A model generated the notes under the pieces. That model had not been told where the DNA came from and did no database searches. It worked only from the letters and a program-made list of their open reading frames with translations. Shown here piece after piece: positions 1-59,562 of a stretch of 64,000 bases of DNA. Source of the stretch: Haliotis cracherodii (lineage: Eukaryota); assembly GCF_022045235.1 (NCBI RefSeq), contig NW_027266308.1:31682001-31746000 (forward strand), written 5' to 3'. How positions within the stretch are numbered: position 1 is the first letter of the stretch; every line of letters begins with the position of its first letter. The translations under genes were made by a program, and so were the position numbers.

Positions 1-1210
1 GTAGCCCACTCGGCCTACAAAAAGCCAACTGCTGCAACGTCTGGGATTGTGGTTGACGTCGGCGTAGTCGTCAGGTGCTCTATCTGGTTCAAATCCGGGA
101 ATCTGGAGGAAAAGGGGAGAACATCAACATTGTTGTTGTGTAAACAGGTTCCTGTGATCCGTGCTGTATGCGGTTGAGCGTTGTCCTGCTGGAATACACT
201 GTTGCTGTTGGCTGCAATTAGGAGGACGCGTGGTAGGAGAATTTCGTTGATGTGTCGTTGAGCCGTAAGATTGCCCTAGATATGGACCAAACCTGTCCTG
301 CCATGATGAGAGATAGCCGCCCACACCATAACTCTACTCCCACCAAACCTGTCCACTACCTATACGCAGTTTCCTGCGTAACGTTCTCCCCGACGTCTGT
401 AGACCCGTGCTCTTCCATCCCCTCGACGGAGGAGAAATCTTGATTCGTCGCTGAACCAGACATGTCTCCATCGCAGTTGAGGCCATACCCTGTGTTGACG
501 ACACCATTGTCCACACCAAAGGACGATGTTGTCAACTCAATATGACGTGTCGAACAGGACGTCTTGCTCGTAGACCTGCTGCTCTTAAAAGGTTTCGTAC
601 GGTTTGGTCGGAGATTCTGAGCAGTTTAGGTATTTGGGATGCGGTTGAGGTGGCTGTGGTCGTCCTTTCACGTAGGTGGCGCAGTCGGGTGTAGCGATCT
701 TGGGCGGGGGTGGTTACTCTTGGTCGTCCCGACCTTGGCCAATCACGTGTTGACCCATGCTGTTGAAACCGATCCCATACCCTTGTGATGGTGCTGGGCG
801 CTGCATTAAAAACCCTGGCTACAGCTGATCGGGATTCCTCTGCCTGCAAGCGGCCTATGCCGTTGTTTCTTTTGCACTTCCGTTAATCTTGGCATGTTCT
901 TGAACTGTCACTATTCGATTTAAGTAGATGCCAGGCAATCCAAAACCCTGCCTTTTAATACCATTCATAGTGCTGCTGCACGTGCAGTACGTGCAGCTCC
1001 ATGGCATTTTTGTTAATGCACTTGGTGCGTTTTTCCGAGTCGTACTTGTTTCCCGAGTAATGATTTGCATGTTCTTGTTGTGATTATTTTGATCCGGGAA
1101 ATTTGTCACTGACACTATAACACATGAAATTATTTTGAACCTCTTGGTCAGCTAATTTTGCTTTTATGGCCAGAAATATCCGTATTGCGCTTCTTTTTTT
1201 TAAAGAGTAT
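1..1210 (-). mobile_element. Decayed Tc1-like DNA transposon, truncated by the window edge
   Basis: ORF 532-849(-) has the Tc1 paired-like HTH (VARVFNAAPSTITRVWDRFQQHGSTRDWPRSGRPRVTT...ISDQTVRNLLRAAGLRARRP). Frameshifted VWFSDESRF lies near 435-460. A Tc1-like terminus TTTTTAAAGAGTATA is at about 1196-1210. Confidence 0.85.
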
Positions 1211-2913: not shown

Positions 2914-5900
2914 CCACTGGGACAAAACACCTCTACATAACTGAGAATGAGAACACTTGGTGGGAAGCTAGAAAAAACTGCAAAACGGAGCTTCAGAGTG
3001 ATCTGTACATTGTTGATACAGAACCCCTTCCTTCAGTCCTGGATGAGTTTCTTAACAACAACACATTCTACTGGGTAGGAGCCATGAGGTATTCAACATG
3101 GATATGGACAGGTGACTACTATGACGTGGAATCCATACATATGACAGTGGTGACAATAATAACACTCGTGTATGCATATATGTATATATGTTACAAGAAA
3201 TATGTATCATCAAGGAATATGTGTATTCCCTGAATATATCTAATGTCTGATTCACTCAGGGAAATTACATAATCCCTATTTATTCTGGTATTATACATAT
3301 TCCCTGATTTAACATCATGTTTCTTAGACATATTCCCTGAAATTACTTTTGAGGCTGTCATTTTGTCAAACTTGATATAAAAAAATCGAGAAGGCAAATT
3401 TATTTGACATGATAACAAATACCTTTTACTTAACTTAACAATTAGTCTTAACTGTAATCAAAACATAGGATAGAAATGAGGTTAAAATACTCAATATGAA
3501 TGCAACACCTCCCTCCTCTCAAGCATCACTGGATTTATATCTTTGACGCAGTCGCAAAGAATAAAGACAAGATTTACTGTAGTTGTTGTAACAACTCATG
3601 GTTATCATTGCCTTCAAAGAATCAGTGTTAGCATATGAAGTACAAACATATTTTAAAAACAAACGAGTTTGCAGCTGCAACAACTTGCGAAATTCAGGGT
3701 ATAAAACTGCCGACATTATGTATTACCTCACATTTTCAAGATGGAGTTAAAGGAAAATTTTCGAAAAAAAAAGTACAAGAGCTATTGTTTGTTAAGTCTA
3801 TCCTATGTTTGATGTAGCATTGTTTTGATTACAGTGAAGAGTCTGACTAATTGTTAAGTTGAGTGAAAGGTATTTGTTATCATGTCAAATACATTTGTCT
3901 TCTCATAAATAATTTGTTTTTTTTTAATCAGGTTTGACTATATAAGAGCCTCCAAAGTAATTTCAGGGCATATGTCTAAAAAAACCTTGATGTTAAATCA
4001 GGGAATATGTATAATACCTGAAATTTTTCGGGATTATGTATATTCCCTGAGTAAATCAGACATTATATATATTCCCTGAAAATTTCAGGGATTACACATA
4101 TTCCCTGATTATACATAGTCCCTGTAACATATATATCACCAAGGTGATCGTAAGAGACGACCAAACATATCGGGTGGTCAGGCTCGGTGACTTGGTTGAT
4201 TGCGTGTCATCGTACCCCGACGGCGTGGATCGTTGCTTACAATATCGACTACTGGATTGTCTGGTCAAGACTCCTTTATTTAAAGGCCGCAGTTGTATAT
4301 TTTATATTGCTGAGTTAGGCGTTAAACAACAAACAAACAATGAACATGTACTCGACTCTCTGGTTTTCTCTTTCTAAAGATGTTGTATATTTGTTTGATA
4401 TTACAGCAGATGATACCCCGCTTTACAGTTATGTCGGTTACACTAAACCAGGTTCAAACCCCAAATACTTGCTCGATAACTCTGTGTACGAGTGTCATCT
4501 TGCATGTAGAAACAAGGACAGAACGTTTGGGCTGAGCGTAAGATTCATCTTTTTTGTTTTTGGTTCGTGTGTCACTAATACTGTTTAAAGAAATACATTT
4601 AATGGAACTTTTAGCTGCGTTGTCATCCTTTCATAAGGGAACGAAACTGATAACTGAAGCATGAGAAAAAACCCAATGACTTCATTATTATACAAAGTAT
4701 CGTTCAAGCAAAGCACTATTTTATTAAGAGAATCGCCTTTCGATAAAATTACATCAGGTGTCATAAAGGTTTTCTGACTACAGTTAATAGTTAATGTTTC
4801 TTGTTGTATTTAGGGCAACAAATGCTATTGTCATAACGAGACACATGCAGCTACAGCTCCCACTGCAGTAGGGATGCAGTGTCCGGGCAACCTAGATGAA
4901 ATGTGTGGCGACGAAGATGTGATGTCAGTCTACACACTTGGTGCTGGTATGTGCGTCCCAACACGGTGTACACTGCCTGTATAGTTGTTACAGCGTCATG
5001 GTGCTCGTAAACGCTTGTTAGAGATTTTTTTAACTATAATATCTATTTCGCGCCAGTAGAAGGATTACGTATATGCTATTTTGTTGATATATCGTTTCCT
5101 TAAAGTTATGACAATGATATTTTGTTTCAGGAAACTTTCGATTTACACCGACACAACATGGGGCATGTGCTTATGCGATGGTCAATGACCCAATCTCAGT
5201 ATACCTCAACCATTACCGCAATTGTTTAACACAAAAGAGGATAATCCCATGTTATGAAAACAGTAAGTATGGACTAGGTCATACACTAACTACAAATCAG
5301 TAACCACTATACATCATATCGACAACACAAGTATTTTTTTCAATTTCGCTTGCTTCTTCAAAACGAATATTCTATACAAAGTGAAAAGAATTGCATGTAA
5401 ATTAAAAAAAGACCTAATGGGGAAGACTTCCAAAACTTGTTAAAAATTCAATCAGAATCATAGACCATTACTTTCAAGATCTAGTGTGAGGTAGTGTGAG
5501 GTTTGCATGATGAATATTCAATGAATATTTCAAACATTTTCTCCTTTCCCCTTTCTCCCAAAATATCGTTTTTATGCAGATTTCATAGTATGCCATTTGG
5601 TTAGGGTGATAAAATTAGGGTAAGGGTTACCTTTTCGCATTGTATTATGGATGAAAAAACTAACGCAGTCTGTATTGGTGGCCAAACCATATTAACTCCT
5701 GAACCTGAAAGGTAATAAACATAGACGCATCTAACTAAAATATCTCGAAAACTGGCTCTGATAACATAAAAACCCGACATAATCTCAATCTGGAGTTTTC
5801 TGATTTTTCCGACTTTGATCATGAACTTGGCAAAAAAAATGTCCCAGTCAACCAGACACGCATATGGGGGTTTGGGAATGTAGCTATGTTCTTCAATCAG

Positions 5901-8900
5901 TCAGTCCATGTACCACCCGTGTGTCATCTACTTTGTTTAGTTAATGTCAGCACTCACATTATGCTACATGTTCTCTATATCTGTGTTGTAGTATCGCAAG
6001 AAAGCAACTGTAATGGGGGCGTTTGTGTTTCCATACAAGACATCCAACAGTCATGGGTACAGGCGTATGACAAATGTCCTATAGTCAAACTGGACAATTC
6101 TACCACATGGTATCTCAAGAAACACATTCATTCAGGAGATCGGATTTGGATTGGTCTCGCATTTAAGGTCTCAAGGAAATGGATCAATGGTAGGTTCCCC
6201 CAGTTTTGCTCTTGTCCACCTGTCAATGTTAACAGTAAGATCATGGAACATGCAATTTATAACAGAATTGTATATTTATTTCAAATTATTCTTGGGGGGT
6301 ACATATCTTGACATATATGAACAACAATGCGGAAATTGCAATAAAACTCCTCAAGGTTCTTCTTACATTATTTTGACATAAATATGAGAAAGAAACAGGA
6401 CAAAACATTGCATTTGTTTCTTAAATGACAAATACAGTCTCTGATCTGTATCTTAATAGTGACAGATTTAGAATCTATTGTTATATGACGTCATTTAGTT
6501 TATGACACCATGTCGGTTGGATTGACTTTGATGCACCCACTGACGCCATAAGGCCAAATCTAACCATCAACAAAGAAGGCGTTCTTCTAAGCAGTCAAAC
6601 AACTTTCGGAGGGGTGGGGTGGGGGAGGTTACTGGGTAGAGTGTGAGATGTCCCACTTGCTCGGCAGATCAGAGAATTACATTTATTAACCTTTCTCAGA
6701 GTGTATAAAATGTGATTCTTGGTCTTATTATGTTCAGGACAATATGTTCAGTTCAGAGAACGCTACCGATATTGAAATGTTCCGGGTGAGTGTACATACA
6801 CATTATAGGTGTAAATATTTATGTATGGTAGCAAATAATATATTCCTTAAAGTTTGCAATGATTTGTGAAACCACAGTTATGTGTATCTGTGATATGTGC
6901 CTTAGATACGAATAGAATGCATTTGTAGAATGAGCCGGGGACAGTCTAGATATATACTCACAACAATGCACAATGACGTTTTCATCGCGGTTTAAATCAC
7001 TTTTCTCTTCCTATTCCCGTTGGCTTTCCTGTTATGGTAACTATATAGTTGTAGTTGTACATTACTCCGACCCTGTGAGAAAATAATAAGATGCATATCT
7101 AGTATAAGCCACATGAACAGCCGACAGACGCAGGAACTATAACAAAAATATATTTGTTAAATTGAGGATTTGTTTAACAGACAAAACATATATTTTAAAT
7201 ATTAGTAGATCCCAAGTGGTGTTCAAAGATACGTGGATATCATTGGACTCTTATGAATGGGGATAGCTAGGATTACAGAAACACACAAATAATTGTGTTT
7301 CCATGGATTTAAAGTTTTTTTCTAAAGTTGTTGTTAGTTTTGAAGCCTATTCTCAAAGGTATTAAATGCGTTTTCTATTTGGCCAGTAAGCCGCTAAGAG
7401 TTACTGTGAGTAACGTTTTACCATTTGTTGGGATAGATCGGTTTACATAAATTTATACGTCTCGAGTTTGGTTCTAAAGTTGTTGTTAATTTCAAAACCA
7501 ACTCCCAGAGGCATTAAATGCGTTTTCTATTTGGCCATAAGTCGTCAAGAGTTACTGTCTACTGGAAATGATCGAAAAGTGACGTACTAAGGGCTTGATG
7601 ATGATGATAATGTTGATGTTGGAGATTTAACGAGCACTTTCGGTTGAACCGATTTCGCACTCGGATGTTCGTAAAGTGCTGTGACATTGCGCTTTTATAG
7701 ATAACCCTGACGTCACGTCAATCACGTAACAAAACTGACAGAGACTTATTCGATTGACGAAAAACACATAAAAATGAAATATAATTAGGGTGAAGCGCTT
7801 TAATGCTTAATTTCACTGTGTTTGAATACATTTCATTCACGTTATCAGAAAATACCCTATGGCGACTTCCGACGAACTTCGCAGTCGATATGTTATCGAC
7901 CCAATGAACAGTTCTCTCGTAAGCCTAGGTCGTGAGAATTAAAAAGTTATCTCGTAAGCTTAGGATGTTGGAATTAAACAGTTCTCTCGTAAAGCTGAGA
8001 TGTCAGAATTAAACAGTTCTCTCGTAAGCCTAAGATGTGGGAATTAAAGAGCTCTCCTGTAAGCCTAAGATGTGGGAATTAAACAGTTATCTCGTTACCC
8101 TAAGATGTTGGAATTAAACAGTTCTCTCGTAAACCTAAGATCTGGGAATTAAACAGTTCTCTCATAAACCTAAGATGTGGGAATGAAACAGTTCTCTCGT
8201 AAACCTAAGATCTGGGAATGAAACAGTTCTCTCGTAAACCTAAGATCTGGGAATGAAACAGTTCTCTGGTAAGCCTAGGATGTGGGAATGAAACAGTTCT
8301 CTCGTAAGCCTAAGATGTGGGAATTAAACAGTTCTCTCGTAAACCTAAGATGTGGGAATGAAACAGTTATTTCGCAAACCTAAGGTGTGCGTATTAAACA
8401 GATTTCCCGTAATCATAAGGTGTGGGAATACAACAGCTCTTTCGTAAGCCTTAATTGTGGGAATTAAGTAGCTGTCTCATAAGCATACTGTATGGCAAAT
8501 TCATTTACATCAATTAATGTTCATCAATCCATTAAATTGCCAGGTTTCCGATACATATGTTTATATAGCTACAAAACAACACAAATGGTTTGCTAAATAT
8601 GATATGCTAAAATATTTTTTTAAAATGACAACTTGGAGATCGTCGATTACAATCGTAATTCAGCATGCGTGCATACATAATAACCTGATGAAAAATAGTC
8701 CTCATACGTCGTTACAAACAATAAGGAACAATAACCTGTGACCTCCGGGGCCAGCTCGCATGATACTGCAGCGTGTTACTATTATAGAGTGTGTTACAAA
8801 GCATTCATGCATGGCATTGAAGCAGTATGAATGAGATCATTAGAGGATCAAGTTGATTGTTTATTAGTATATTAACGACTTTTCTTCACTTTAAACTTGA

Positions 8901-11580
8901 TTGGAATATACATGGTCAAAGATGGTACTCATAAATCCTACAATTACTTTTCGTACATGTATGTTTCAAGGAAAAGACGCCAATGGATATGAGGATTACT
9001 ACCCGTTCATAAACTCACCTATACAAATGTGCCTTGCTTTGAAAAACGATGGAGCAAGGAAGCTGTACTGGGTACCGTGCTCTCTACACCTTAGTTCTAT
9101 TTGTGAAGGTAATAATTATGAGAAACTTGTACCATATGTTCAAGTGGTTTTATATTATGTAAACAATTGACTTGCCTTTGCATGTGTTTTGAGAGGTGCA
9201 GGATACGCTAATCTTTTCCCTACCACCTGGCATCATCACTATTTGGTAGTGATTCTTAAACACATGCTCATGATATACTGGGACTCGTACAATGGACTCT
9301 TCTTTTTGCAGACTGAGGAAAGGGCTCTGTCGCTTTTATTACCAAGATAATCAGAATACCATTAAGTAGAGCATGTGTGATCATGATTAAATGATAAAAC
9401 ATCATTTCAATATAAGTAGAAAGGCCACCAAATATTTTCTCACGGTTAAGGATGCGATTATTTTGTGTATGATAACGTCTATTCTGGATCTGTTCTCACT
9501 CAAAGTCACTGTCAGTCTTGCCACAGTTTTGCCACAAATCCAAATGACCTGTCCCTTTAATATATCTTCCTTTATCTAAATTATGCCAGTGAGTAGATGC
9601 TTTTTCCTGACAAAATGGTTGGCTTAAGGCCCTACCAGATGTCAACATTTAGTATGTGAGGGTAGCATTCTTCGTAAGTCTTTGTGGGTCCAATAGATAT
9701 GCCCATCAACAAATACATTCTTAAGAAAGGCTCTATTTCTTTGACAACAATGGAAAGGTATTCCTGCAATGAATGTGACATAGTGTTGTATCATTGGCAT
9801 AACTGTCGCTATGTATCTACTTGCCGCATGTATTTCACACTTCCGCAGTGGTATTACTGAACATTCTGTGACTATAATTGATCTCATGTGTTTATATCCA
9901 GTTTTCTTTTACATCCTCATCTTAGCTCCAACGTCGTCAACAACACTAGGATCGTCAAACGGAGGTATTTCTACTGAGGGTCAAGTCTCAAACCAGGATG
10001 ATGGAGTTGGTCAATCTGATACACAGACTGGTAAGCATCCACAACAGAAACCGATCCCTATCATTGTCCCATAGATATCCTCAAAGCAACAAAATTAAAA
10101 TAATGTTGAGTAAATTTAACACTTTTATTAATTTGTACAGTATATGTTTATTTCTAGGTCTGTACATAGGACTGGCTGCAGGCAGTTGTATCCTTTTGCT
10201 GATTATCATCGCTGTAGTCTGCTTTGTGCGAAGGTGAGATGTCAAACAGGCACTTCTTTCAACATTTTACAACTACTATTGATGCAAAATGTTAAGTGTA
10301 AAGGTGTCTTTCCATCTTTGAAAAAGTGATTTCTGAAATAAGACATGTTCTATATATATCATTTATCTTCCTTACATTTTATCCTAAAAAAGTCATGTGT
10401 CCATCATTTATCCTTCTGTAGCCTGCATCAATGCGTCGGTACTGTACATCAAAATTGATATGTTACACATCACGTGCTAAGTCCAGAAGAAAACATTATA
10501 AATAAACACACAGCACTACCTTAGTGATTCACACAGCAGTTACTCACAAAACGATCAGCAGTGAACAGGTAGGGTGGTGACTTATGCAGTGTTAACAGTC
10601 ACTACTGTGACAGCTGACCAATACAAAAATACTCCCCTTGGCACGCTTCATGGCCCTGTGGGGAATCCCTGTAAGAGGAGCAAACTAAAATGGGGATCAG
10701 ATGTCAGGCTCTATTGTTTTTTATATGTCAAATTATTCAATATGGTTGCTCATGCTATTACTTACTAATTTGCCATGCCCAGACATGTAATTTACAGGCA
10801 GCATTTATATAGCTTTTTGCTGTCTGCGGCTTTCAACAATATGCACTCACTCACAGAGGGTGCAGAAGTGCCAGAAACGTATGAACGTTGGTGGAAATCT
10901 CTAGGTTCTTCGGCACGATAGCTATGTTCGTGGGTTTCACTAAAGTAGTATATGTCAAGCCGTGCATCATGTTGGACTATCCTCCTACATCAAACTGACA
11001 AGCAGTGATATAACTATAACGGTTATAACGCAAACCTACTCCCTAACTATTGGAACGTATTAACTATTTATTTGTTACATATATCATTTTGATAAGCCTA
11101 TTTTACAGGCGACGAAAAATCCGTTTGGAAATAACAGATGAACAGAGGATCTTCAACACGGCCACAGAAAACATGACCTATGATATCGATGTACCAAGAG
11201 ACAATGAAGCAATTTCTGTTTCCCCAGACTTCACTCCTGTCCCAAAGGCGACAGTTAATCCCACCACCCACACTGAGAAAGCCTACATGAACCATCCTGG
11301 GACTAATGTTGAGAGTGAATACAACTATGACCACGTGGATGCGACAGAGGGAAACTACGACACCGTGCAGCAAGGGGGAAACGCGAGAACGGTAGATGAG
11401 TCGTATAGTCGCATAGGCAAGATAAACAAGAAGTTTGAAGAAGGTGCCTATGATACCACAAATACTGGGTTGGTTGTGAACAGGTTTGATGACACCTACA
11501 GCCATACGTCTGAGTCCGATAACAAAACTTCTGATTACTGTAATACAAGATCTGTTGTCAGAGATGATCTGATGTGTTAA
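2914..11580 (+). CDS. Receptor gene 1: CTLD-half/WSC/CTLD-half/CTLD/stalk/TM/Tyr-rich tail, 5' leader exon missing
   Basis: Phase-compatible GT-AG exons 2914-3111, 4407-4537, 4814-4946, 5131-5262, 5992-6189, 8971-9108, 9926-10030, 10158-10233, 11109-11580 form one open frame of about 526 aa. Motifs include TWWEARKNC..YWVG..WIW, SVYECHLAC..GLSGNKCYC..CPGNLDEMCG..SVY, WIGL, WVPC..ICE and TM IGLAAGSCILLLIIIAVVCFV. Exon-by-exon homology to genes 2 and 3. Confidence 0.85.
3184..4134. mobile_element. Foldback/MITE-like element with ~190-bp TIRs in a gene 1 intron
   Basis: 3184-3370 is the reverse complement of about 3935-4134, with internally repetitive TTCCCTGA/TCAGGGAA units and TA-rich flanks. 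The orthologous intron in genes 2 and 3 is only about 120-140 bp. Confidence 0.7.
4147..4340 (+). mobile_element. SINE-like repeat, family C (GTCGTAAGAGGCGAC...GGCGTTAAACAACAAAC)
   Basis: Homologous to 26397-26640, 57693-57888, 21890-22085(-) and 63795-64000(-). Confidence 0.7.
7909..8485. repeat. 35-bp minisatellite, about 16 copies, in a gene 1 intron
   Basis: Unit CAGTTCTCTCGTAAACCTAAGATGTGGGAATTAAA repeated head-to-tail with 35-nt period (e.g. 8119, 8154). Confidence 0.95.
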
Positions 11581-16311: not shown

Positions 16312-19300
16312 ATGTGGACTGCGAGGCTGCTTGCCTGTTACCTGCACTGTGTGTATGCAACTAGTGTCAACATATGTAAGTAAACGTCTCCACTTACTGT
16401 AGTTGTTATTCCTTTTAATGTCAATTTTTCATTTGAAGAGTTGTTATGTTTACTTTAATATGTCAGAAATATCTCAACTTGGATTTTTTTATCCGAATAT
16501 GTGGAACCACAATGATTACTAGGGGGTGTCTAAGCCTTCAGTTTCGAAACTGTCATCGTGTTAACATGCATGCAAAAGTCAGGGGTCTGTACTTCGAATT
16601 ATGTAACATTTTCCCTTTTCATCTGTGTATGGCATCTCTTTGTTAGGGCCCACGTGTCACGGTATGATATTGAATTTCACATCTGAGAATATAGTATTTT
16701 TTAAATCAAATATTCATTCAATTCATCACGCACTGTCATTCCTGTCCTTTCTCTACGTGTCGCTCCAGTGTGCATTTGGACGTGAGTAGGAATTCGTTGT
16801 CATTGTCGCTGTCTATGATTCAGTCTAAAACAGTTATTCAGTTTATAATATACATTGCCATTGCAAAACTGTATTTTCTGTAAGTGTCTCAGTTATTTCC
16901 ATTTATACCTTTGAGTGTACTTATGAACACTATGCCATCCACGTAAGTGAGTGAGTGAGTGAGTTTGGTTTAACGCCGCTTTTAACAGTATTCCAGTTAT
17001 ATCACGGCGTGTCAGCTTAATGTGGGAGGAAAGCCCGACGTGATGCAGGTCTCAGACGTTTACCACTTCGGTGAAACCCACGAGCACGGGTATGGTGCTG
17101 ACAAACCTAGAAACATAATTGGGGCAAACCGGGATTCGAACCCACAATCCTAGTTTTCTGGCGTGCCCAAGGGACGCAACTCTGCACAGCGAATCGCGGC
17201 GCCTTAGACGACTGGGCCAGCCATCCACGTAAGGAAGTAACACAATTTACTATGATGTGCTTATAAGGTAATAGGCTTTTTATCAAGGAAAATCATAATT
17301 TAGATGGGAACATTTGTTATCAGTAACAGTAAATTCATATCGAGTTTGCTGGCTAGTGAACATGCTTTGATAGGCATCGCGTTCCTAATATTACATTGAA
17401 TGGTTTCAACTGCAGTCACAGATTTTCCTCAATTCACAATCTCGGACAAAAGCTTTACAGCCATATCAAACAGCTATAAGGAAGTTATTTATCCAATCAG
17501 GACGATGATATGGTCATAAAACTGCCAGTCATGTATATCTATTTATATAATATCGAGAGCTGTGTATTCCAAAACGAATGTCTTCCCTTACATGGCAGAA
17601 TGGCATACTGACGTCAAATCAAGTGACATCCGGTGAGATATAAGCTGAGCTCGATAACTATTTATCAGTGAATGTTACCGGAGGAAGAGTACCAAGAACT
17701 GGATAAGTGCTAAAGTATCGGTTCCACGGTATCTTCATTTTGATGAAAACGATTTAACGTTGTTATGCCATTTGTCTTGCAAACTCACTGAGTTACACAG
17801 TAGGGCAGTGCTGCACGGGAATAAGATTCATCAATATGTCCTCATCTGATTCTACTCTGTTTGAAAGAGTTTCAAGGTCATATCTGAATTTGTAACTACA
17901 ATTGGAAAACCACTTAATGCAATGCATTATTTTTATAGAAGACCCATAACAGAACCAATTTAAAGGACCATTGTATAATACTGTGACTCATTTGAAGCTT
18001 AATATTATGTAACGTGTATACATTTTACACACAGTGACGTTATGTTAATTGCCAAGCGAGGGTATTCTTATTTGCGGGGCACGGGTGGTCTGAGCCGACG
18101 CAATTCGCTGTGCAGATCTGCGTCGCTTTGGCCCGCTATAAACCTTTATTGTGGACTCCCGCTTCGCCCTGATCACTTCGGGTGTTCGTCCACTATCAAG
18201 CTGATACGCCGTTACATTAATGGAATACAGTTCAAAGCGGCGTTAGATGAAACCCACTCACTCGCTCTGTATTTGATTAAGATGCGATCCGATCCGATCC
18301 TTTAAACATGAGCTAGATATTGTAAATGTAATTAATTGACTTTAGTGAAATGTTACTTTTGGGTGTATGTTCCGGTACATTGTATAAAATGTCAGTGAGC
18401 CCGTATCATTATTTCACTTCTATATTATTCCTTTTATGACAACTGAGTTCACAATACTGTACTATGCCTCCTTAATTTGGAAGTTTCAAACGACTTCAGT
18501 TTGGTTTTAAATCTACTTTCTAAATCTATAACACAGTGGTCGTGTTGCCTAATTACGCAGAAGAAAACAAAACATGATAAAAGCGTAAAAACTGAGGTGT
18601 GGTAGAAAGAACTCCAACTTGAGTAGTAAGAAATAAAAGTTTTCAGATCAAGGTCAACATAAATCAACAAATGTGATATATGTAAAAACACAATTGCAAT
18701 CAATTTATATGAGACAACACTAATTGACATCGGATAGGAAAGCCTTAAATGGTGTGGACCGATAATGGATACGTTACTAAATTATATGTCATTAATCATT
18801 TGCAGCCACGGAGACAAAACACATCTTTATAAACGAGGAGGAAAACAACTGGTGGGATGCTCGGAAAAACTGTAAGATGGCGCCGGAGAGAGATCTGTAT
18901 ATTTCTGATGCAGAGTTCCTCCCTCCACTCGTGGATGAAAACCTACACAGCAACACTTCCTACTGGGTAGGAGCCATGAGGTATTCAACATGGATATGGA
19001 CAGGTGAGTCTGTAGAAGTAGTTCCCACATCTAAATAGAAAATAGATATGCATAAAAGCTGTGTATGCATTTATCTTAACTTATAGTTAATCTGTTGTTG
19101 ATGCCTCTTATGTATGATGTTACAGAAGATGGTACCCCGCTCTACAACTATAATGGATACAATTATACAACTCCAGGAAGCAGCCCCAAAAGCAACTTGT
19201 CTTACAACTCCGTTTTCGAGTGTCACCTCAAATGTCCATCCAACCGTATAGTAGGCCTGAGCGTAAGGAGAATGCATGTTTTTGGTGACACAATACTATT

Positions 19301-22300
19301 GATCCCAAAGTGGTAAAAAGAATTAAATTACGTATGTACATTTACTTCTGTTTTGAAAACCTACAAACGACACACGAAGGACGCATGAGAGAAGGATACA
19401 GATGTGTTGAAGTAATGTTGTACAAACACATCATATGCTAATAAAAGAACCGCTGTGCAGTAAAAAGATCATAATTTCCTATCGTAAAGTGTTTTTTTAT
19501 GACAGGGATACTCAACTCATCATTGTTTCGTTATTTATAGGGGCAAAGGTGTTATTGTCTCGAAAATGCGCATACAGTAACAAATACCAGTGCAGGTGGG
19601 ATGCAGTGTCCTGGCAACCCAGAAGAAATGTGTGGCAACGACGATGTCATGTCAGTCTACACACTAGGTACTGCTGTGTGCGCATTTACACGTGTATTAC
19701 ATAAAAAAATCGGAGAGTATTGTTATAAGGTTATACTCAAAGGCAACAATCTTCTTGTGTTATGTGTGTTGTCACTTTTATCTATGTTAGAGGGGTTCAC
19801 ATTGATATACTGATGGTCAGGACTCTTAACTTCCGGTTTCTCTTAGTTTGTTTTCTTGTCAACATTATAGCCATATGGTAATATAGTTTACAGTAACGTG
19901 TAATGTACGTAATGCTCAGGATGTAAACGATATATTGAGTCATAAATAACTTGTGTATGTTTGTGTGACTGTATGTTACTTTCGCCTTTTTGTAGGAAAC
20001 TTCAGCTTTAAACCCAGGAGGACTGGAGTATGTGCTTATGCAGAAAAAAATACAACTACAATCTCCATAAAACCAGACTATTACTACAAGTGTGTAACAC
20101 AAAGGCGAAGATTTGCATATTATTCCCACAGTAAGTATGGCCGACGTTGTCGTCTGCTTCACACAAGTTTGATCACATCCCTCTCTTACATAATCAGTAT
20201 TTCCTGCAGCCTGAAATTATTTACCAAAGGGAATTCAACAAATGTAAACTTTAATACCCCAATATAAACCTAAACAAAACTACTCATGTCAACCCAAGCT
20301 CGTAACTGTCACGTGCACATTGCATGGTCCTGCCAAGCACAGAAAAATAATCGCGTTCTGGCATTAAAACAAATAAATACAGTAACTAGAGCAGCAAATA
20401 CTGGTTTCAGAATGTATTTCAATTGTTGACGTTTCCGAATGAACCGAAACTTCCTTCACGCAAACAGTCCACGATAAGTAACACAATACACATCTACTAA
20501 ACATAGAGATCTTGTATTGTCACGGACTGTAGTAAATTATTACTATGATTAATTTAACAATATTCGTATAATCTCATGGATTGTGTTTTTCGATGCCTTC
20601 TGGTTTTACCTACGACGTTATTGGATATCGTAATTCATATGTTTGTAGATACTCACCACTGGAACTGTAATGGGAGCGTTTGTGTGTCGGCGGGAAACAA
20701 CTCGCAGTCATGGATCAACGCTCATAAATCAAATGATCTGATCAAACTAATCTCCTCCACTGCAAGAGATATCCGCAATATTCCAGGATATTATAAATTT
20801 TGGATTGGGCTTGTACTAAAATTCACAAGGAAATGGACTGATGGTACGTTTCTAATACCTGCCAGGTTTGAATGGTATACTACTGAAAAATGAAACGCAT
20901 ATCTGAATTCAACACATTTTATATAAATAACTAATTCATTTGGTGATAAATGTGTCTCACATAATTATTGTCTGTGTATGAAGAATTCATTAATCATTAC
21001 AAAATTAGCAATATCACTGGTCACAAAGCTCAAAGATGTAACACCTCAATATCGTGTATGACCACCATTGGAATCAATAACAACTTGACACCGTAAAACC
21101 ATCCACATGAACAGTTTGGGGATGTTATTCCACTCAAGTCCTGCAATGTTTCAGGATCAGTGTTTGGGTTCAGATCTGGTGATGTATAGGAATGTTGTTC
21201 TAGGCTACTCAGTTTTGAAACAAGAGTTGTCGTCTTTGTCATGTTGACAAGCGACGTAACATTGGTTCATGAATGGAATGACATGTGTCTGAAGTGGAAG
21301 TTGACAATAATGGCGTGTCAGATCAAAGCCACATGTGTGAGCTCTGGTTTCTACTTCCTTCAATGATTTCTGACGATTTGGTCGCAAATACTGCGCAGAC
21401 CTGGAACAACAGAAGTGGTAGAGGGGGCCTTTAAGAAACGGTTGCGGAGGCGAGGTACGCGGACAAAATGATCCTGGGTGGACGTGGTCACCCGTGGTCT
21501 TTCAGAACGAGGCAAGTCACACGCTCTTCCTTGAGCCTGGTAACGGTGCCAAAGTAGTCCTACGGTGATCTGCGAAACGATCTGTAGCGTTCCCCAGCAT
21601 CCAAACAGACAATGGCATTGTTTCGTACATCCTCATCATGTCCTGACGTGACTTCCAACGTTCACCGCTCCTCGGGCCCCGCACGTTTGTTTTGTGAGAT
21701 TCCATCTTTATGATGCTACTTTGGTTCTGACACAAACTATGTGTATTCGGATGGTGAATGAAAACCACTATGTGTGCAAACCACGATATGGACATTGCGA
21801 AACCATTTATTGATAATGATACCCAACTCTAAATAGCTTACTTAGTTTTTTATTTTGGAATATTAGTGTTAAGAGACATGGAACGGATAAAAAAGATTTA
21901 CGCCACACTCAGCAATAGTACAGCTATCTGACAGAGGTCTGTACATAATCCAGACAACCCGGTTACGGATGTCATAACCTTTGAGATTGGGATACGATAA
22001 CATGCATCAACCAGTTCTGACCACTCGATCCTGTTAGTCGCCTCTCACCAGAAGTATGTGGTGCTGAAGACCAATTCTAATCCCGAGTGAGTGAGTGAGT
22101 ATGGTATTACGCCGCTTTTAGCAATATTCCAGAAATATCACTGCGGGGGACACCAGAAATGGGCTTCACAAAAAATCACTAATTTCAGTATAGCACTATT
22201 GAAAATGACACTGGAAAATGGCTAAATCAAATGGCTTAATTGTATAAATGGCATAAATGATTTAGTAATATTATGAATTTCAAGGCTTTTAACATATGCC

Positions 22301-25103
22301 AATGTTCAGCATAAAGTTGTGACAAATGCGGGCTACATATTCTGAGTAAGGGAATATCGTTAGTCCGGAAACTCCACCTTGCAGGGACACTGGGGCACTT
22401 GCTAATCCGGACTATTTCAGTGGGAACGCAGCAGCCAGAAATTACTTGGTTTCACCGTATAGCAAATAATCAGCTATTCCGTTCACAACCATCATACAAA
22501 TCTCATTCAATGGGAGGAACAGTGTGTGCTACTATAACGAATGTTAAAACTTCTCTCTTCCGTGGCATTACAAAAACGCCTACAGCAGGATGTAGCAGGG
22601 TCTCTGATTTTGTTAACTGAATAAAGTACCTTTAGATTATGACAAATAACCAGATACCACAGAACCAGGCTTAATCATCTATTTACTTTAAGTGACCATA
22701 ACTATGAAAATAAAAATGTTATTTTGCAGCTTATTGCAATGTTCACTTAATGGTTAGTAGCTTAAACTTATATGATTCCAGGACAAGAGGTCTATGGCTC
22801 TGGTGAGAACTTTCCGCTAATTAGTTCACCAACAACAACATGCCTAGCTATGAAAAACAACCATGGCATATGGAAGCCGTACTGGATACCATGCAATTTG
22901 CGCCTTGCATTTATTTGTGAAGGTAATAGGCATGTAAGACGAATATGTTGTTTTACACAATGGTAATTATAAGTGGATTCTCTTCAATCTTTACATTCAA
23001 TGCTAAGATAATGTTAAAAGATATGACTATAATACATATCTCTTCAGCTGTTTTTCCAAACAATAAATTAAAGAGATGGGTTTCTTTTATCAGATCTTAT
23101 CAGAGGCCTTCTCTCTTTCATTTACTTACCCCCTCCCTCCGTCTGAACTACACGTGCTGTAATTACGTACATTGTGATTTTACTTCGCTAGTTGAAGGAC
23201 CCACAGATAACCCTACGTCTACTGTTGGAAGTTGTTATCATGTACAAATGTAGGGTTTTTTCTTTAGTGATAAGATATCCCCCAAATGAATCACATCAAA
23301 CTTCGTCACTAATGTGAACATTTGCAATGACATTTACCGATTATTGGACATTTGTTTAAGGATAGAATTTCATTCTTAGCTAAAACAGTAATATCACAAT
23401 CAACATCGACTTTAACGTCTACATCAACGTCAACGCCGTCATCAACACAGTCGCCGTTGTCAGGGGGAGATTCCACGGATGTTCCTTCCCATCCCTCTAC
23501 TGGCAAGCAGTCAGATGTAGTTGAACAAGCTGGTAGTCAGAGAGGTAAGTATCTACTACAGTCGCCGAGGGTAGCCCTGTCACGCAGAAATACAGGTTCG
23601 AATCCTAATATTTGGATATTGTTAAATGTGGTGTAAAACCATTTTCTTGTGTACGTTTAACACGTTTAATAATCCTTTTAACATACACATTTTTCTATAT
23701 TCCCAGGTGTTATCATAGGACTGGCTATCGGCAATGCGGTTTTCTTACTGATAGTCATCGGTTTAGTGTTTCTTCTGCAAAGGTGATCTTCTTAGCAGCA
23801 CTTCTATAAACAGTGAAAAAAAAACCATTCTTGACATGTATATTGTTAACTGCTTAACTGCTTACATTTATGAAGTGGCTTTCCATCTTCGGATCAACTG
23901 TTTGTGAAATAGCATCTCCTAATATGTAGATGTACAATTGATATCGAGCAGCATTTAGATAAGGGTCACGATTGCCGTCAGTAATATGACAGTCACGCGA
24001 ACTCGTTTTTATTCCAATGTGGATTTCTCTCAATTCCGGCCGAGATAACCTGCGGGGTTGAGGCGACCTGAGTGACCCTATTCATTCGTGTGTTTGGCCA
24101 TTTTGCTTTAAAAGTGTTTCGAGGATTATTTCAAGTTGTAAAATATGACATCACATCAAAGAGTACAATTAATCTATTTTGGTTGGAACTTATTAACCAC
24201 TTACTGTGCTAAATAGAAACAATCAAGTAAACATATTTCATTTAAAATTACGATTCGGGGCATTTTATACATCACATTAGAGCATGTGGCTAATTATGTT
24301 TCAGGCAACGCAAATTCCATTTGGCTAGAAAAGATACGAATCAACAGATGGTCTTCAACAGGTCATAAACATAACTAATGTAAAGTTACTATTAAGGGCA
24401 TGTACATCACATTCAATCATGTTGCAAATGCTGTTTCAGACAACGGAAACTCCGTTTGGATAGAAAAGATACGAATCAACAGGTGAACCTCAACCCGCCA
24501 ACAGAAAACACGACCTACGACGGTCTCGATGTTCCGAGAGACAATGGCGCATATTCTGTTATAACCCCAGACACAATTGACGGGAAGCCATTCACTCCCC
24601 CTGTTCCAACAGTGACAGTAAACCCAAACACTCACACTGCGAAAATCTACGTGAACCATCCTGAGACTGATGTTGAGAAGGTGTCCAATTCCCTCTCAAC
24701 GCCCAGTAAACAACACACCGACATGCCAAGAGGAAAGCCCCACATGCATCTCTCTGGACCCGACTACGACACAGCAGAATGTATTCTACAGTCGAGAAGC
24801 GGAGATGGAAGGGACACTGGACTGGATAGATCTGCAGGAGGTACTGATGTAGCCATCTCCGAGGGTGTTCAGTACCACATCCTCGAGAAGCGCAGCTCCA
24901 CGGGAAGGGATGAAAGTGATGCTGGTTTGTATGACCACACGGAAGCGGCAGAGGGAAACTACGACACCACACGGGGGAAGGCCAGAAATGTAGATGACTC
25001 GTACAGTCACATTGGCGCGATAGATAAGGGGTTTATAGAAGGTGACTATGATGTCGCTGGCGCTGGGCCTGTTGTGATCAGGTTGGATGACACCTACAAA
25101 TGA
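16312..25103 (+). CDS. Receptor gene 2: signal peptide/CTLD-half/WSC/CTLD-half/CTLD/stalk/TM/ITAM+ITIM-like tail, about 633 aa
   Basis: Exons 16312-16375 (MWTARLLACYLHCVYATSVNI, donor GTAAGT), 18806-19003, 19126-19262, 19541-19667, 19996-20130, 20649-20843, 22782-22922, 23380-23544, 23707-23782, 24440-25103 total 1902 nt in frame. There is an alternative in-frame ATG at 16288. Confidence 0.85.
16945..17220 (-). mobile_element. tRNA-derived SINE, family B, in gene 2 intron 1
   Basis: TSD GCCATCCACGTAAG on both sides. The paralogous empty site is near 60228. Confidence 0.85.
17490..17733 (+). promoter_or_regulatory. Conserved intron-1 block with a CRE palindrome (candidate enhancer)
   Basis: Alignable with about 32670-32975 in gene 3. 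TGACGTCA is present in both (17609-17616, 32818-32825). Confidence 0.3.
20950..21850 (-). mobile_element. Decayed Tc1-like transposon in a gene 2 intron
   Basis: Minus-strand RPRVTT (about 21485-21500) and SPDLNP (about 21165-21185) motifs, frameshifted. Absent from the matching gene 3 intron. Confidence 0.7.
21890..22170 (-). mobile_element. Family C SINE-like copy followed by a family A SINE 3' fragment
   Basis: Homology to other copies in the window, and a GAGTGAGTGAGT tail at 22085. Confidence 0.65.
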
Positions 25104-34600: not shown

Positions 34601-37600
34601 AATTTGCTAAAGATCAAATTTTAATGAAATAAAAATATCATCCAACAAATAAAGATTGACATATCCAATGGTCCTACAGGAACTCAATTTCATAGTGAAC
34701 GGATAGAGGCATGCAGTCATGAGCACGATGTGCACGAGGTGTTTGAACACCTGTGATTGGATGTATCGTGACAGAATCGTTGCGCATCATCACCAGAGAG
34801 CACAACCGCATTTGCTAGTGTGGATGTCAACAATGAAATGCACTGATCCCTTCTCAGCATCAAATCGTCGTTTGACGACCGAAGAATAATGTAGATGCAT
34901 AGGCATGCTTGAAACTGGGCCAACACAACGTTACGTTGCAAATGTCTTCGGTGTCAGCCAAATTGTGATCGGTGGGGCATGGAGGTGAAATAGGCTTTAA
35001 CCTCCAGCTCATGATTATTGCACTTATATAGCGACGTGTCAGACCTTTGGATACGCTTAGCCAGCGACATGAAGGTGTTCAACAGCGTTCCTTCACACAG
35101 CGGGAAGACAGGTTTCTTCTGATTGCAGCAAGACGTCATCACGTCGTGACTGCAACCACACTGTTAATGGCGTTAACATTTCTACTAAGACAGTGCGTAA
35201 TCGTCACCCCGAGGTTGATGCACGGTCTCACGGTGACAGGTGGGCGCTACAGGGATGACTTTATGGAAAGGGTTTTGTCGCTTTATTTCTATATGTATAC
35301 GTGAGACGATATGCTGCTGCAATTGGACCGGGTTTTTTATCCCCCGCCGGGCCAGAATGGCCGAAGGGGGATTATGTCATGGCGCAGTCCGTCCGTCCGT
35401 CTGTCCGTCCCAATCAGGGTACTAAGCTTGTGAAATCAACTCCTCCTACAGTTTCCAGAGAATATCCCTGAAACTCTACACACAAGATGTGGACATGTTG
35501 ATGATACGCATATCGCAGTCCCGTTTCATTTCGACTAATTTTGACAGAGTTACTGCCCCTGTTTTACGGAGCTTCATTTGCCTTATTGTGAGAGAGGGTA
35601 CTAAGCTTGTGAAATCAACTCCTCCTACAGTTTCCAGAGAATATCCCTGAAACTCTACACACAAGATGTCGACATGTTGATGATACGCATATCGCAGTCC
35701 CGTTTCATTTCGACTAATTTTGACAGAGTTACTGCCCCTATTTTACGGAGCTTTATTTGCCTTATTGTGAGAGAGGGCACTAAACTTGTGAAATCAGCTC
35801 CTCCTACAGTTTCCATAGAATATCCATGACACTCTACACACAAGATGTCGACATGTTGATCATACGCATATGGCAGTCCTGTTTCCTTGCGACTAATTTT
35901 GACAGAGTTACTGCCCCTGTTTTACGGAGCTTCATTTGCCTTATTATGAGACAGGGTACTAAGCTTGTGAAATCAACTCCTCCTACAGTTTCCAAAGAAT
36001 ATTCCTGACACTCTACACACAAGATGTTGACATGTTGATGATACGCATATCACAGTCCCGTTTCATTTCAAGTAATTTTGACAGTGTTACTGCCCCTGTT
36101 TTACGGAGCTTTATTTGACTCGTTAAAAAAATTCATGCGGAGGATGTTGTGCTCTCAGAGCACTCTTGTCCTTATGGACGATAACGTACGACCTCATCGC
36201 GCCAGGATCGTTGATGCCTACTCAGAGCATCAACGGTCACCAGACCTCAACCCTATCGAACATATATGGAAAGAGCTGCAGATCACCCTCTCACAACGCT
36301 CTTTCCCTCCGGCATCTCTACAGGAACTCGGCAATGGTAATAATGAAGAGTGGAACAATAATCCCTTGGCAACCATCATGGCACTTATTGGGAGCATAAG
36401 ATGACGGCGATAAGCTGTGATCGCACCAGGTAGATCTGATGTGCGCGACTTAGAGTTGTTTTTTTTGGACAATGAATTCAATTTGGTTTTTCATAATTTT
36501 TTGACGTTTCAGTTTTGGTAAGATATTATCATTTTGACAGGTAACCTGACTGATAATTGGTCGCATCTCTTTTGCTGTCATTGTGTGGCAAATGACGACG
36601 GACTTTGATTCATTAAACTTGTCTTCACGCAATATTGCCTTTAGTTATTTCAATAGATGCACGCAATTTGACGTATTACCTTTGAAAGTTGTGATCATTA
36701 GCAAACCTGGAGTAATATATATGCATATATATCTGAAAGCAGATGTCTTGACTACGTCGCATATGTAGATACCAACAGTGGATATAATTTTTAAATATGT
36801 TAATTAATCATTTGCAGCCACGGAGACAAAACACATCTTCATAAACGAGGAGGAAAACAACTGGTGGGATGCTCGGGAAAACTGTAAGATGGAGAGAGAT
36901 CTGTATATTTCTGATACAGAATTCCTCCCTCCAGTCGTGAATAGCTCTCTACAAAGCAACACTTCTTACTGGGTAGGAGCCATGAGGTATTCAACATGGA
37001 TATGGACAGGCGAGTCTACAAAAGTAACAGTACATGTAGTTCCCAAAGCTAAATAGATACTATATATGCATCAATGTGGCGTTGTCTATGGATTAATTGT
37101 ACTTGAAGTTAATCTGTTATTGAAGCATGTAATGTATGATATTACAGAAGATGGTACCCCACTCTACAACTATGAAGGGTACAGTGCATCACCCACAACG
37201 AGCCCAAACAATGTATCCAGTAACTCTGTTTACGAGTGTCAACTTCAGTGTAAAACCAACCGTACAGTGGGCCTGAGCGTAAGAGTTTCTTTTGTCACAA
37301 ATAGTATTGATCCCAAAGTTGTATAAAGAATAGGATCATGTTGGTACATTTTCTTCTGTTTTGAAAACCCACACACGACACATGAAAGAAACATGAGAGC
37401 GAGAGATACTATTTGTTAATGTAATGGATGTTGTACAAGTACACCTGGATAATAAAAGATCCTCTTCATATTGATATCAATGGGTTTTTTTTATGACAGA
37501 AGTAACATGTTATAATATGTTTCAATGGCATTCTTGAGTGAGTGAGTGAATCAGTGAGTGAGTATGTTTTTACGCCACTTTGATCAATATTCAAGCAATA

Positions 37601-40600
37601 TCACAGTAGGGGACACCAGAAATGTGTTTCACATATTGCACCCATTGTGGGGAACCCATGAGCGAACGTTTTAACCACTAGGCTACCCCACCGCCACGGC
37701 ATTCTAAACTTGGGAGAGTAAATAAGAAAATGTACAACTTTATGAATAACAACGTCTGTTTATTCCATTAAGCAACGTTTCGATGCAGGTTCTTACACCG
37801 TCCTCCACTCCAGCTTGATAACGGTGTAAGAATCTAAATCGAAACGTCGCTAAATGCAATAAACCAGAAATTGTTATCCATAAAGTTTTATGTTTTCTTA
37901 CATGTTATATGGCCGATTGTTTGTAGGGGTGGACGTGTTAATGTCTCTGAACTAAGCTTTCCAACTATGATGGGTGCCGTACCCCATCAACAGGAAATAC
38001 AACAGGGTCGCTTTACAGTTCACTTTGCATGGTCACCTTCAATGTACAACCACCCGCACAACAGGCCTGAGCGTAGGACAGTGAAACCTTTTGTGTTGGA
38101 AAGAGTGGTGAAAAGAATTAGATCACATATTTACATTTCCTTCTGTTTTGAAAATTCCAAACGACACATGCAGAAAGCATGAGGGAGGGAGGGATTCTAT
38201 TTCTTTATGTAATTGATGTTGTACAAGAACACCATGATAATGTAAGAACCGCTTCATATTCATATCATTAGTCATGTTATGAAAATACTCTTTTTGTGAC
38301 AGGAATATACAACATATTTTGTGGTTTGTTGTGGTAGGGGGAAGTGTTACTGTCTAGGCAAAAGTATACAAATAGCAGTGCAGCAGGTGGGATGCCGTGC
38401 CCGGGTTGATTAGTGACTATGACACGAGTACACAAAGTCATTATGTGTTTCTGTTTTGTAGGGGGTAAATTGTTATTGTCTCGGAAATTCGTATAACGTT
38501 ACAAATACGAGTGCAAGAGGGATGCAGTGTCCGGGAAACCCAGATGAAATGTGTGGCGACGCCGCTGGGATGTCAGTCTATACGCGTGGTACTGGTATGT
38601 GCTTCCCTACACTTATATTATATCAAATATCGGATAGGCTTGTTAAAAGCTTGTACTCATAGGCAACATATCATCTTGTGTTATCTTCGAAGTTCACGTT
38701 GATATTGTGACAATCTAATAATCAAGATCATGCTGTTATCCTGAAGTTTTACTTCCGGCGACTCTACGTTGTGAACATAATAGTCATATTATAATTGTCA
38801 TAAACTGAACAATTCATTTCATTCAAGGTTTTACAAGAATAGGTAATGTACCTGATAATTGTATGTAAATTATGCTGTGTCACAAATAACTTGTGTATGT
38901 TTGTGGGACTTTATGTCACTTTCACCTCCTTGTAGGAAACGTTGGGTTTAAACCCTCGAAGATTGGCCGATGTGCTTATGGAGTGAAAATGAATAATACA
39001 GTTTCAATAGGACTAGACTTTTACTACGCTTGTATAGATTATAAGCGAAGATTTGCATATTATTCCCACAGTAAGTATGACCTATGTTATCTCACATCAC
39101 TCTGTGACACAATCGGCGTTTCCTGCAGTCTGAAATGATTTACCCAGGACACACATGACCAATCCTAACTCAACAAATGTAAACTTTAATACTTCAGAAT
39201 AAACTAAACTAAAACGCTGATGTCACCCATAGATCGTAACTGTCACGCGCATGTAGACCGCGGAAAACATATAAGTAATTATGTAAAATATGTAATTATG
39301 TAAGAGCCGCATACACTGCTTTCAGAATGCATTTCAAACGTTGACATATCTGAATAGACTGAAATTCTACAGCCCACGACAAGTACGATACAACAGACTA
39401 AGGATAAAGATCTTGCATTTTCGTGGCCTATCCTATAAGCGTATCATCACAACGATTTAAATAAAATCCGAACTTATAAAATCCCATATACTACGTTTTA
39501 CTCTGTCCATTATCATCGGCAACTTTCTAGTTGTACAACTAAAAAGACGTTACCGGACATCGTATTTCATATGTTTGTAGATACTCAGCAGGAAAAATGT
39601 AGTGGGAGCGTGTGCGTGTCCCCATCAGCGAAAAGCCAGAAACAGATATGGACACATGCTCATTACTCAAATGATCTGATCAGACTCAACGATTCAACTG
39701 CAAGAGAGATCCAGAATATTCCAGCATCATCTGTTTACTTTTGGATTGGGCTTGTATTGAAAGTCTCAAGGAAATACGTTGATGGTGCGTTTTATTATTT
39801 TGTGCTAACCTGTCAGTTTAAATTGTAAAAGGGGCGGTCGGGTAGCCTTGTGGTTAAAGCGTTCGCTCATCATGCCGAATACCCGGGTTCGATTCCCGAC
39901 ATGGGTACGAAGTGTGAAGCCCATTTCTGATGTCCCCGCCGTGATATTGCTGGAATATTGCTAAAAACGGCGTAAAACCATACTCTCACTCACTAAATTG
40001 TAAAAAAAACCGTTTATAACAGGAAATTGGTCTTTGATTTGTTTGAATTAATAAGTTAGCAGTTGTTACCACAAATAACTAGACAGCAACACCGTAGAAC
40101 CAAGTACATTCATCTATTTACGTAAGTGTGTACAACTATTAACATAACTTTATCATTTAGAATAATTAATACCGCTGGTTGCATTGTATAGTCAGTGGAT
40201 TATTGTTTCCAGGACAAGAGACCAATGGAAATGAGGATTACATCTTCCTTCGTTCCGAAGATCCACCAACATCGACATGCCAAGCTTTGAAAAAAGATGG
40301 CGTCTGGAAACAATACTGGCTACCCTGCCATTTGCGCCTTGCTTCTGTTTGTGAAGGTACTTAGCATGTGAGACGAATATGTTGTTTTACACAATGGTAA
40401 AGGGGTAGATTCTCTTTAATCTATTCGTATACATCGCTCTGATAATGTTATAAGATATGACTACAATGCAAAATCACATCGTCCTTTTTCTAAACAAAGA
40501 CGGGATGCGTTTCTGTCTTCTTTAGATCTTACTCCCCCCTCCCCTCCCCCCCTCTCTCTCTCTCACTCTCTCAATCGTACGAGCGCACACTATTGTTGCA

Positions 40601-50899: not shown

Positions 50900-51088
50900 T
50901 TTAGCTCATGGTATATGTTATCGCATAAGGAAAATTCGATATTGCTATGATATTGCAATTCAACGAAAAAAGAAGTCTTTCACAGATTATGCGTTACAAT
51001 AATCACTTCTTTCGAACCGTTGTAAGCGTTCTTCTTCCCTGTTGGGTAAACCACAGCGAGTAGATGTATATGCACACAGGCCGGAGAT

Positions 51089-59357: not shown

Positions 59358-59498
59358 ATTTGAACAGACCATAGTACAAAAGATACATCAACAGGATCTG
59401 GGATACAGTCAGTTTTCCGCTCTGTTTTCCGAATCTGCGTTCTACTTCCCTGTTGGGTTCACCACAACGAGTAGATGCATGGCACACAGGCCGGAGAT

Positions 59499-59562
59499 AT
59501 GTGGACCGCGAGGCTGCTTGTCTGCTACCTGCACTGTGTATATGCAACTAGTGTCAACATAT
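59499..59562 (+). CDS. Leader (signal-peptide) exon of a fifth receptor copy, downstream exons not seen in the window
   Basis: MWTARLLVCYLHCVYATSVNI plus phase-1 donor GTAAGT. The intron-1 start is homologous to genes 2 and 3 up to about 60250. Confidence 0.65.

Follow-up and report, generated by a model that had tools for sequence, protein, structure and literature searches.

Predicted cross-pairing of C-type lectin-like domain halves, one domain putatively permuted within the other, in a family of abalone membrane proteins

The window analyzed in this study is a stretch of 64,000 nt from the abalone Haliotis cracherodii (GCF_022045235.1, NW_027266308.1, forward-strand 31,682,001-31,746,000). 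It is intron-bearing animal DNA with three paralogous genes, here named genes 1, 2 and 3, that lie head to tail on the + strand and share one exon kit. Exon A encodes the N-half of a CTLD (C-type lectin-like domain), exons B and C a WSC domain, exon D a CTLD C-half, exon E another CTLD N-half and exon F another CTLD C-half. The part 3' of exon F encodes a stalk rich in Ser/Thr, a membrane span and a long tail rich in Tyr, and the product of each gene is a type I membrane protein. Predicted structures and cysteine patterns across the family are best explained, in our judgement with fair probability, by a crosswise pairing of the four CTLD halves, A with F and D with E, in which the inner domain would be circularly permuted and nested in the outer one.

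As described in PMC6272133, the canonical CTLD is built of the sheets beta0-1-5 and beta2-2'-3-4, with C1-C4 and C2-C3 as its bonds and a long loop connecting beta2 to beta3. In the gene 1 protein, the outer CTLD would be made of exon A and exon F and clasped by C44-C329 plus C305-C321. Exons D and E would make up the inner CTLD, in which beta3-beta4-beta5 precede beta1-alpha1-alpha2-beta2. Its clasps would be C215-C247 and C187-C206, and C225-C230 would staple the turn newly formed between beta5 and beta1. The WSC and inner domains would together occupy the place of the outer domain's long loop. In genes 2, 3 and 4 (the last lying downstream of gene 3), the inner clasp C215 and C247 would have been lost as a pair, which would leave no cysteine unpaired. 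These putative disulfide pairs follow from the predicted fold and the co-loss pattern. The inner domain is read as a permuted CTLD because the two leftover halves are complementary, are both confidently modelled and follow one another in the secondary-structure order beta3-beta4-beta5-beta1-alpha1-alpha2-beta2.

The starting point was an earlier reading made from the DNA letters (hereafter the sequence-only reading), which singled out positions 5131-9108, corresponding to exons D, E and F of gene 1, and proposed that two cysteines absent from genes 2 and 3 pair with each other. The motifs that it quoted were all located, each once, on the + strand and at equivalent exon places: IIPCYEN at 5241-5261, QAYDKC at 6060-6077, RFAYYSH at 20109-20129 and 39049-39069, NAHKSN at 20717-20734 and HAHYSN at 39655-39672. 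Two NCBI proteins of H. cracherodii, P0155 (547 aa) and P0005 (623 aa), correspond to gene 1 and gene 3 with zero mismatches against the window exons, and whole-protein analyses were done on these database proteins. The exons concerned are listed below.

2916..3110, + strand: gene 1 exon A, CTLD N-half (P0155 aa 23-87), with beta1, alpha1 carrying the Cys of ARKNC (C44), alpha2 and beta2 'WVGA...WIWT'; proposed N-half of the outer CTLD
4409-4537 and 4814-4948, + strand: gene 1 exons B and C, six-Cys WSC domain between the first CTLD N-half and the first C-half
5133..5261, + strand: gene 1 exon D, CTLD C-half, with C187, C206 and the terminal C215 in IIPCYEN (codon 5250-5252); would be the first part of the inner permuted CTLD
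5994..6191, + strand: gene 1 exon E, CTLD N-half, with C225, C230, the helix-1 C247 in QAYDKC (codon 6075-6077) and 'WIGL'; proposed second part of the inner CTLD
8973..9107, + strand: gene 1 exon F, CTLD C-half, with C305, C321 and the terminal C329 in SSICE; structural matches stop at model residue 331-340; proposed C-half of the outer CTLD
18808..19002, + strand: gene 2 exon A, helix-1 Cys retained
19995..20129, + strand: gene 2 exon D, terminal Cys replaced in RFAYYSH (Tyr codon 20118-20120)
20651..20845, + strand: gene 2 exon E, helix-1 Cys replaced in NAHKSN (Asn codon 20732-20734)
22781..22918, + strand: gene 2 exon F, three Cys, all retained (…AFIC)
36820..37008, + strand: gene 3 exon A (P0005 aa 31-93), helix-1 Cys retained, followed by a GC donor
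38938..39069, + strand: gene 3 exon D, terminal Cys replaced in RFAYYSH (Tyr codon 39058-39060)
39583..39786, + strand: gene 3 exon E, helix-1 Cys replaced in HAHYSN (Asn codon 39670-39672)
40215..40355, + strand: gene 3 exon F, three Cys, all retained (…ASVCE)

Counted over exons A/B/C/D/E/F, gene 1 has 1/2/4/3/3/3 cysteines (16) and genes 2 and 3 each have 1/2/4/2/2/3 (14). Exon-wise alignment places the Cys of IIPCYEN opposite the Tyr of RFAYYSH, and the Cys of AYDKC opposite the Asn of AHKSN or AHYSN. Alignments and counts agree with the sequence-only reading that genes 2 and 3 lack exactly two cysteines, the last one of exon D and the helix-1 one of exon E, and that all three genes retain the exon A helix-1 Cys and the final Cys of exon F. 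Since genes 1-3 are clear paralogs, this difference is not a chance match. In gene 1, the four cysteine positions are present in each CTLD repeat.

To follow these residues across the family, homologs were collected from genomes and protein databases. With exon A of gene 2 as the query, 15 copies were found on the window's contig of the H. cracherodii genome, and the same exon order was seen in all 12 copies outside the window; a second genome search gave three further loci. A profile of the 15 exon A peptides compared with 1.84 billion representatives produced 550 matches at E <= 0.001, and the majority of those inspected were ordinary multi-CTLD proteins. The WSC motif was present in 24 of the 167 proteins collected, all 24 of them from Haliotis (H. 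cracherodii, H. rufescens, H. rubra or H. asinina) and all annotated as 'uncharacterized protein'. Among these 167 proteins, the family was seen only in Haliotis, and a third search, by word index with a 22-row family alignment, yielded no additional members.

In the paralogs of the H. cracherodii genome, the exon A helix-1 Cys and the last Cys of exon F are both present in 15/15. The last Cys of exon D is absent from four of the 15 (genes 2 and 3, L016 and L027), and the exon E helix-1 Cys from six of 14 (these four, L018 and L026), L021 being left out of the latter count for an in-frame stop in exon E. Among the 22 aligned database proteins, seven lack both cysteines, namely six members of the gene 2/3/4 clade and P0165. 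Two others (P0023 and P0161) lack the exon E Cys alone, each with one new Cys elsewhere, and none lacks the exon D Cys alone (P0051 has T in that column and its Cys in the adjacent position). The exon A and exon F cysteines were found in every database row that reaches the site (18/18 and 21/21, respectively). In L028/L029, the black-abalone relative of P0165, exon D has lost all three cysteines and exon E its helix-1 Cys; exons A and F keep every Cys.

The INDEPENDENCE of co-losses was assessed on a maximum-likelihood tree of 26 ectodomains, where they fall in three separate places. One is the clade of genes 2, 3 and 4, whose sister is the gene 1 clade (support 95/96). Another is P0165, nested among members that retain both cysteines (support 100/100), and the last is P0037, which stands on its own branch and whose exon motifs match those of L027. 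The exon D terminal and exon E helix-1 cysteines were thus lost together three times. At the minimum, the tree requires 3 changes at the exon D Cys and 5 at the exon E Cys. The sequence-only reading had treated genes 2 and 3 as sisters recording a single evolutionary event; this caveat no longer holds, because two further independent co-losses exist elsewhere in the family. Partial Mantel correlations of per-exon distances were 0.33 for A-F and 0.35 for D-E, against 0.24 for A-D and 0.06 for E-F, which is weak support since such tests are unreliable.

Other cysteine changes were observed in the same exons. In exon E of L018/P0007, P0159, P0164 and L032, the Trp of the WIGL motif is immediately preceded by an additional Cys, which gives an odd cysteine count in P0159 and P0164; this Cys may be a free thiol or form an inter-chain bond. 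In the L020/L021/P0137 clade, the two cysteines at the start of exon E are lost, and one Cys is gained three residues before the last exon D Cys and another in the beta1 region of exon E, which looks like a replacement bond across the same D-E junction. The stop in exon E of L021 (G000:C45:49466873-49476872, minus strand) falls at the Trp that is conserved in helix 1. L021 is probably a pseudogene; L020, a close paralog, is open.

AlphaFold2 models of P0155 and P0005 were built with the 22-row family alignment. The P0155 model is confident, with predicted local distance difference test (pLDDT) values of 79-93 in 10-residue blocks over residues 31-220 and 241-290, except for residues 141-150 at 69. 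In each of three structure searches with the two models, the CTLD match spans exon A to exon F in 50/50 listed PDB matches; one of the three compared P0155 with 48,161 representative chains by a method other than Foldseek. All 150 listed structural matches end in exon F, and all but a few of low quality begin at the exon A beta1 strand or just before it. Among the listed P0155 matches, none lies wholly within exons E and F (219-333) or stops at exon D (218). For P0005, the range is 32-33..343-353 in 46 of the 50 listed VIA matches, the other four beginning at 5, 21, 25 and 28, one of them with a root-mean-square deviation (rmsd) of 9.2. For gene 1, structural matches begin at model residue 17-27. 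Pfam Lectin_C (PF00059) matches P0155 at 34-98 (profile 2-68 of 107), that is over the N-half only, at 32.2 bits against a cut-off of 22.6; P0005 has no match at E <= 0.01.

We also considered that a stray N-terminal strand added to a normal second domain could give rise to the range 19..333. This was ruled out by the chains that start at beta1, such as E-selectin residues 1-123, whose first aligned P0155 model residue is 26, in the exon A beta1 strand, and by the absence of a contiguous domain in Foldseek. Foldseek, which aligns in sequence order, matched the P0155 model to single CTLDs at E of about 1e-2 only, and the good fits extended over about 75 columns (3wbr_A, rmsd 2.8, TMt 0.47). Contiguous alignments of greater length fitted poorly (8rov_A, 116 columns, rmsd 12.8; 9kpl_A, 88 columns, rmsd 13.2). 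Well-fitting matches of the P0005 model covered 57-73 columns. Both models thus predict a full CTLD assembled from two distant pieces, exons A and F, without any contiguous CTLD.

The predicted domain has the CTLD fold, which is defined by two helices and the sheets beta0-1-5 and beta2-2'-3-4. The bonds C1-C4 and C2-C3 are not predicted to lie inside one contiguous domain; the models and the co-losses instead point to a bond between C1 of one repeat and C4 of the second. In 19 of 21 proteins, each ectodomain has two W[IVL]G[LAG] motifs, both one-motif proteins being N-terminally truncated. CTLDs that bind carbohydrate in a Ca2+-dependent manner carry EPN or QPD, together with WND, in the long loop and beta4. 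None of EPN, QPD, EPD, QPN and WND occurs in the 21 ectodomains, and EPS occurs twice, away from the expected place.

The insert between exons A and D has the WSC fold: in both models, Foldseek matched it to yeast Wsc1 (7pz2_A) with a probability of 1.00 over 90 columns (rmsd 2.7-2.8, TMt 0.65-0.66). Pfam WSC (PF01822) scored 26.5 (P0155), 20.5, 20.6 and 22.5 bits against a cut-off of 27.8, and precomputed database annotation assigns PF01822 to P0155, P0153, P0011 and P0166. In the subfamily of P0164, P0166 and locus L032 (G000:C45:46972100-46982099, minus strand), two consecutive WSC domains are present inside the CTLD.

Taken as computation, the A-to-F CTLD in two AlphaFold2 models, the co-loss in three lineages and the fact that the conventional partners are never lost argue for pairing of the two co-varying cysteines with each other, as the sequence-only reading proposed. 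Several observations weigh against it. The alignment behind the models is shallow (22 rows, one genus) and common to both, so the models are not independent, and pLDDT in the D-to-E link of the P0155 model is only 67-74. The structural matches are judged by their first and last aligned residues, and a sequence-order aligner cannot match a whole permuted domain. By sequence, Pfam reads exons E and F as an ordinary contiguous Lectin_C domain in P0034 (224-318) and P0128 (259-340). The exon E Cys was lost alone in three lineages (L018/P0007, L026/P0023 and P0161), and L026 is left with an odd cysteine count and no new Cys; odd counts also occur in P0159 (17), P0163 (17), P0162 (19) and P0164 (23). 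Covariation is seen as joint loss in three lineages, but a sign test on the database proteins was not significant (p 0.5), because only 2 independent pairs with both traits known were available. The sequence-only reading had reasoned that genes 2 and 3 would otherwise have two unpaired cysteines. Their even count of 14 agrees with this, whereas the odd counts and single-Cys losses elsewhere indicate that unpaired cysteines are tolerated in the family; the parity argument is therefore weakened and not compelling by itself.

One rival reading is a conventional beads-on-a-string arrangement, as would be expected by default of tandem CTLDs. The first CTLD would then consist of exons A and D, with the WSC domain in the long loop, and the second of exons E and F, genes 2 and 3 would have two buried unpaired cysteines, one per domain, and the AlphaFold2 topology would be an artefact of the single 22-row alignment from which both models derive. 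The contiguous Lectin_C matches in P0034 and P0128, the tolerance of free cysteines and the non-significant covariation test speak for it. It leaves unexplained why neither model contains a contiguous CTLD and why no listed match stops at exon D or keeps to exons E and F. It would also imply 3 losses of one bond partner in the first domain and 5 in the second (6 with L027), with zero losses of the other partner, and in L028 the first domain would join a Cys-free C-half to a Cys-retaining N-half. We regard this arrangement as possible but unlikely. Much less probable is a mixed state, in which full-Cys members of the gene 1 type would be conventional and only the Cys-loss lineages would have re-paired the exon A and exon F cysteines as an inter-domain bond. 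It would account for the even counts of genes 2 and 3 without an unusual fold in every member, but the gene 1 model, with all 16 cysteines, has the same A-to-F domain as the gene 3 model, and refolding would be needed in each of three independent lineages. Moreover, both cysteines face the core of their own domain in a conventional CTLD (C1-C4 bond; PMC6272133), so that such a bond would require an exchange of halves anyway. An exchange limited to beta5, in which the last strands with their terminal Cys are swapped between otherwise conventional domains, would give the same disulfide pairs and the same A-to-F aligned range. About 100 contiguous residues (exon E and most of exon F) should then superpose on a CTLD, but good Foldseek fits stop at 57-75 columns, and we give this option equally little credence.

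The nested, cross-paired fold was compared with known systems. Natural killer-cell and myeloid receptors (NKR-P1B 6e7d, NKp80 8qmd, Dectin-1 2bpd, CLEC5A 2yhf) have a contiguous CTLD and are type II, whereas in the abalone proteins the matching residues lie about 200 apart and the protein is type I. The mannose-receptor family (MR, Endo180, DEC-205, PLA2R) shares the presence of several CTLDs in one type I ectodomain, but each of its domains is contiguous. Its chains, 435-1335 residues long, aligned to the P0155 model over just a single domain of 112-124 residues, and sequence-order alignment over about 350 columns gave an rmsd near 20. WSC domains such as those of yeast Wsc1 (7pz2) and Kremen (5fwu) sit beside other domains, whereas the abalone WSC domain is inside a CTLD. 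Typical WSC domains have eight cysteines; the abalone one has six. A natural circular permutation is found in swaposin, the disulfide-rich saposin-like insert of plant aspartic proteases, whose C-half precedes its N-half in the chain; the fold is unrelated, and swaposin is a single domain that is not nested in a second copy. The CTLD long loop can swap between molecules, as reported for NKR-P1A, the mannose receptor and snake venoms (PMC6272133). These loop-swapped CTLDs (snake-venom C-type lectin-like dimers, the NKR-P1A crystal, mannose receptor CRD-4) use the same beta2-beta3 long-loop hinge but exchange the loop only and between two chains. In the single-chain abalone models, the whole C-half is predicted to be exchanged within one chain, permuting one domain. 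Full-text literature searches, whose coverage excluded subscription journals, returned no paper on a permuted or nested CTLD, nor on the abalone family.

The ectodomain exon boundaries that were read are in phase 1 at both ends, with the exception of the phase-0 B-C junction, and exon skipping keeps the frame for this reason. NCBI annotation, on which the statements about isoforms rest, includes isoforms that skip D, E, D and E together, the WSC exons, F or A. Examples are isoforms X1-X4 of H. rufescens LOC124111983 (P0178, P0009, P0179 and P0177, respectively), and also P0011, P0156, P0037, P0007, P0160 and P0172. In P0177 (X4), exons D and E are both skipped in the annotation, leaving A-WSC-F with 10 cysteines, and P0160 consists in this region of part of the WSC domain plus exons D and E. 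The nested fold may have arisen by tandem duplication of a CTLD and a subsequent change of partners between the identical halves. More tentatively, the CTLD within a CTLD would go back to partner exchange in a fresh tandem duplicate, with the inner domain as a splice-removable cassette by which receptors switch between heads with one and two lectin domains; we think this fuller scenario conceivable but on balance doubtful.

Several further features were observed in the window and in the family. The intron after exon A of gene 3 has a GC donor at 37009-37010 (ACAG|GCGAGT), which is used by the NCBI model P0005; genes 1 and 2 have GT. Downstream of gene 3, two more copies of the signal-peptide exon and one tail-exon fragment were found (51074-51151, 52369-52515 and 59484-59561). 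No ectodomain exons lie near these three pieces within the window, exon A of gene 4 being about 41 kb past the last one, and the pieces may be remnants or far-upstream first exons. In two intron regions of gene 3 (37589-37969 and 39748-40001), contig depth was very high and inverted or back joints were numerous in all three read runs; these are high-copy interspersed repeats. The three runs, small and of uncertain kind, showed no splice joints and, apart from intron repeats, gave a single contig, on exon D of gene 3. In the P0128 subfamily, which also includes locus L031, the cytoplasmic tail contains a Tyr-motif unit (…EDQYNVL…GVYHHVGPG…) of about 30 residues, repeated in tandem to give about 8 copies.

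The CTLD is among the commonest extracellular folds in animals and, as far as we found, is always described as a contiguous unit closed by the C1-C4 bond. We found no description of the cross-paired arrangement, as predicted from structure models and cysteine patterns, for this fold. If true, a natural chain with two interlaced CTLDs, of which one is circularly permuted, would have a topology new to the superfamily and be a clean natural case of half-domain exchange after tandem duplication. It would also mean that beads-on-a-string annotation from sequence can misstate which residues belong to a domain and which cysteines pair. For these abalone receptors, the usual sugar-binding place would be filled by the WSC and inner domains, which would change how the ligand-binding surface is read.

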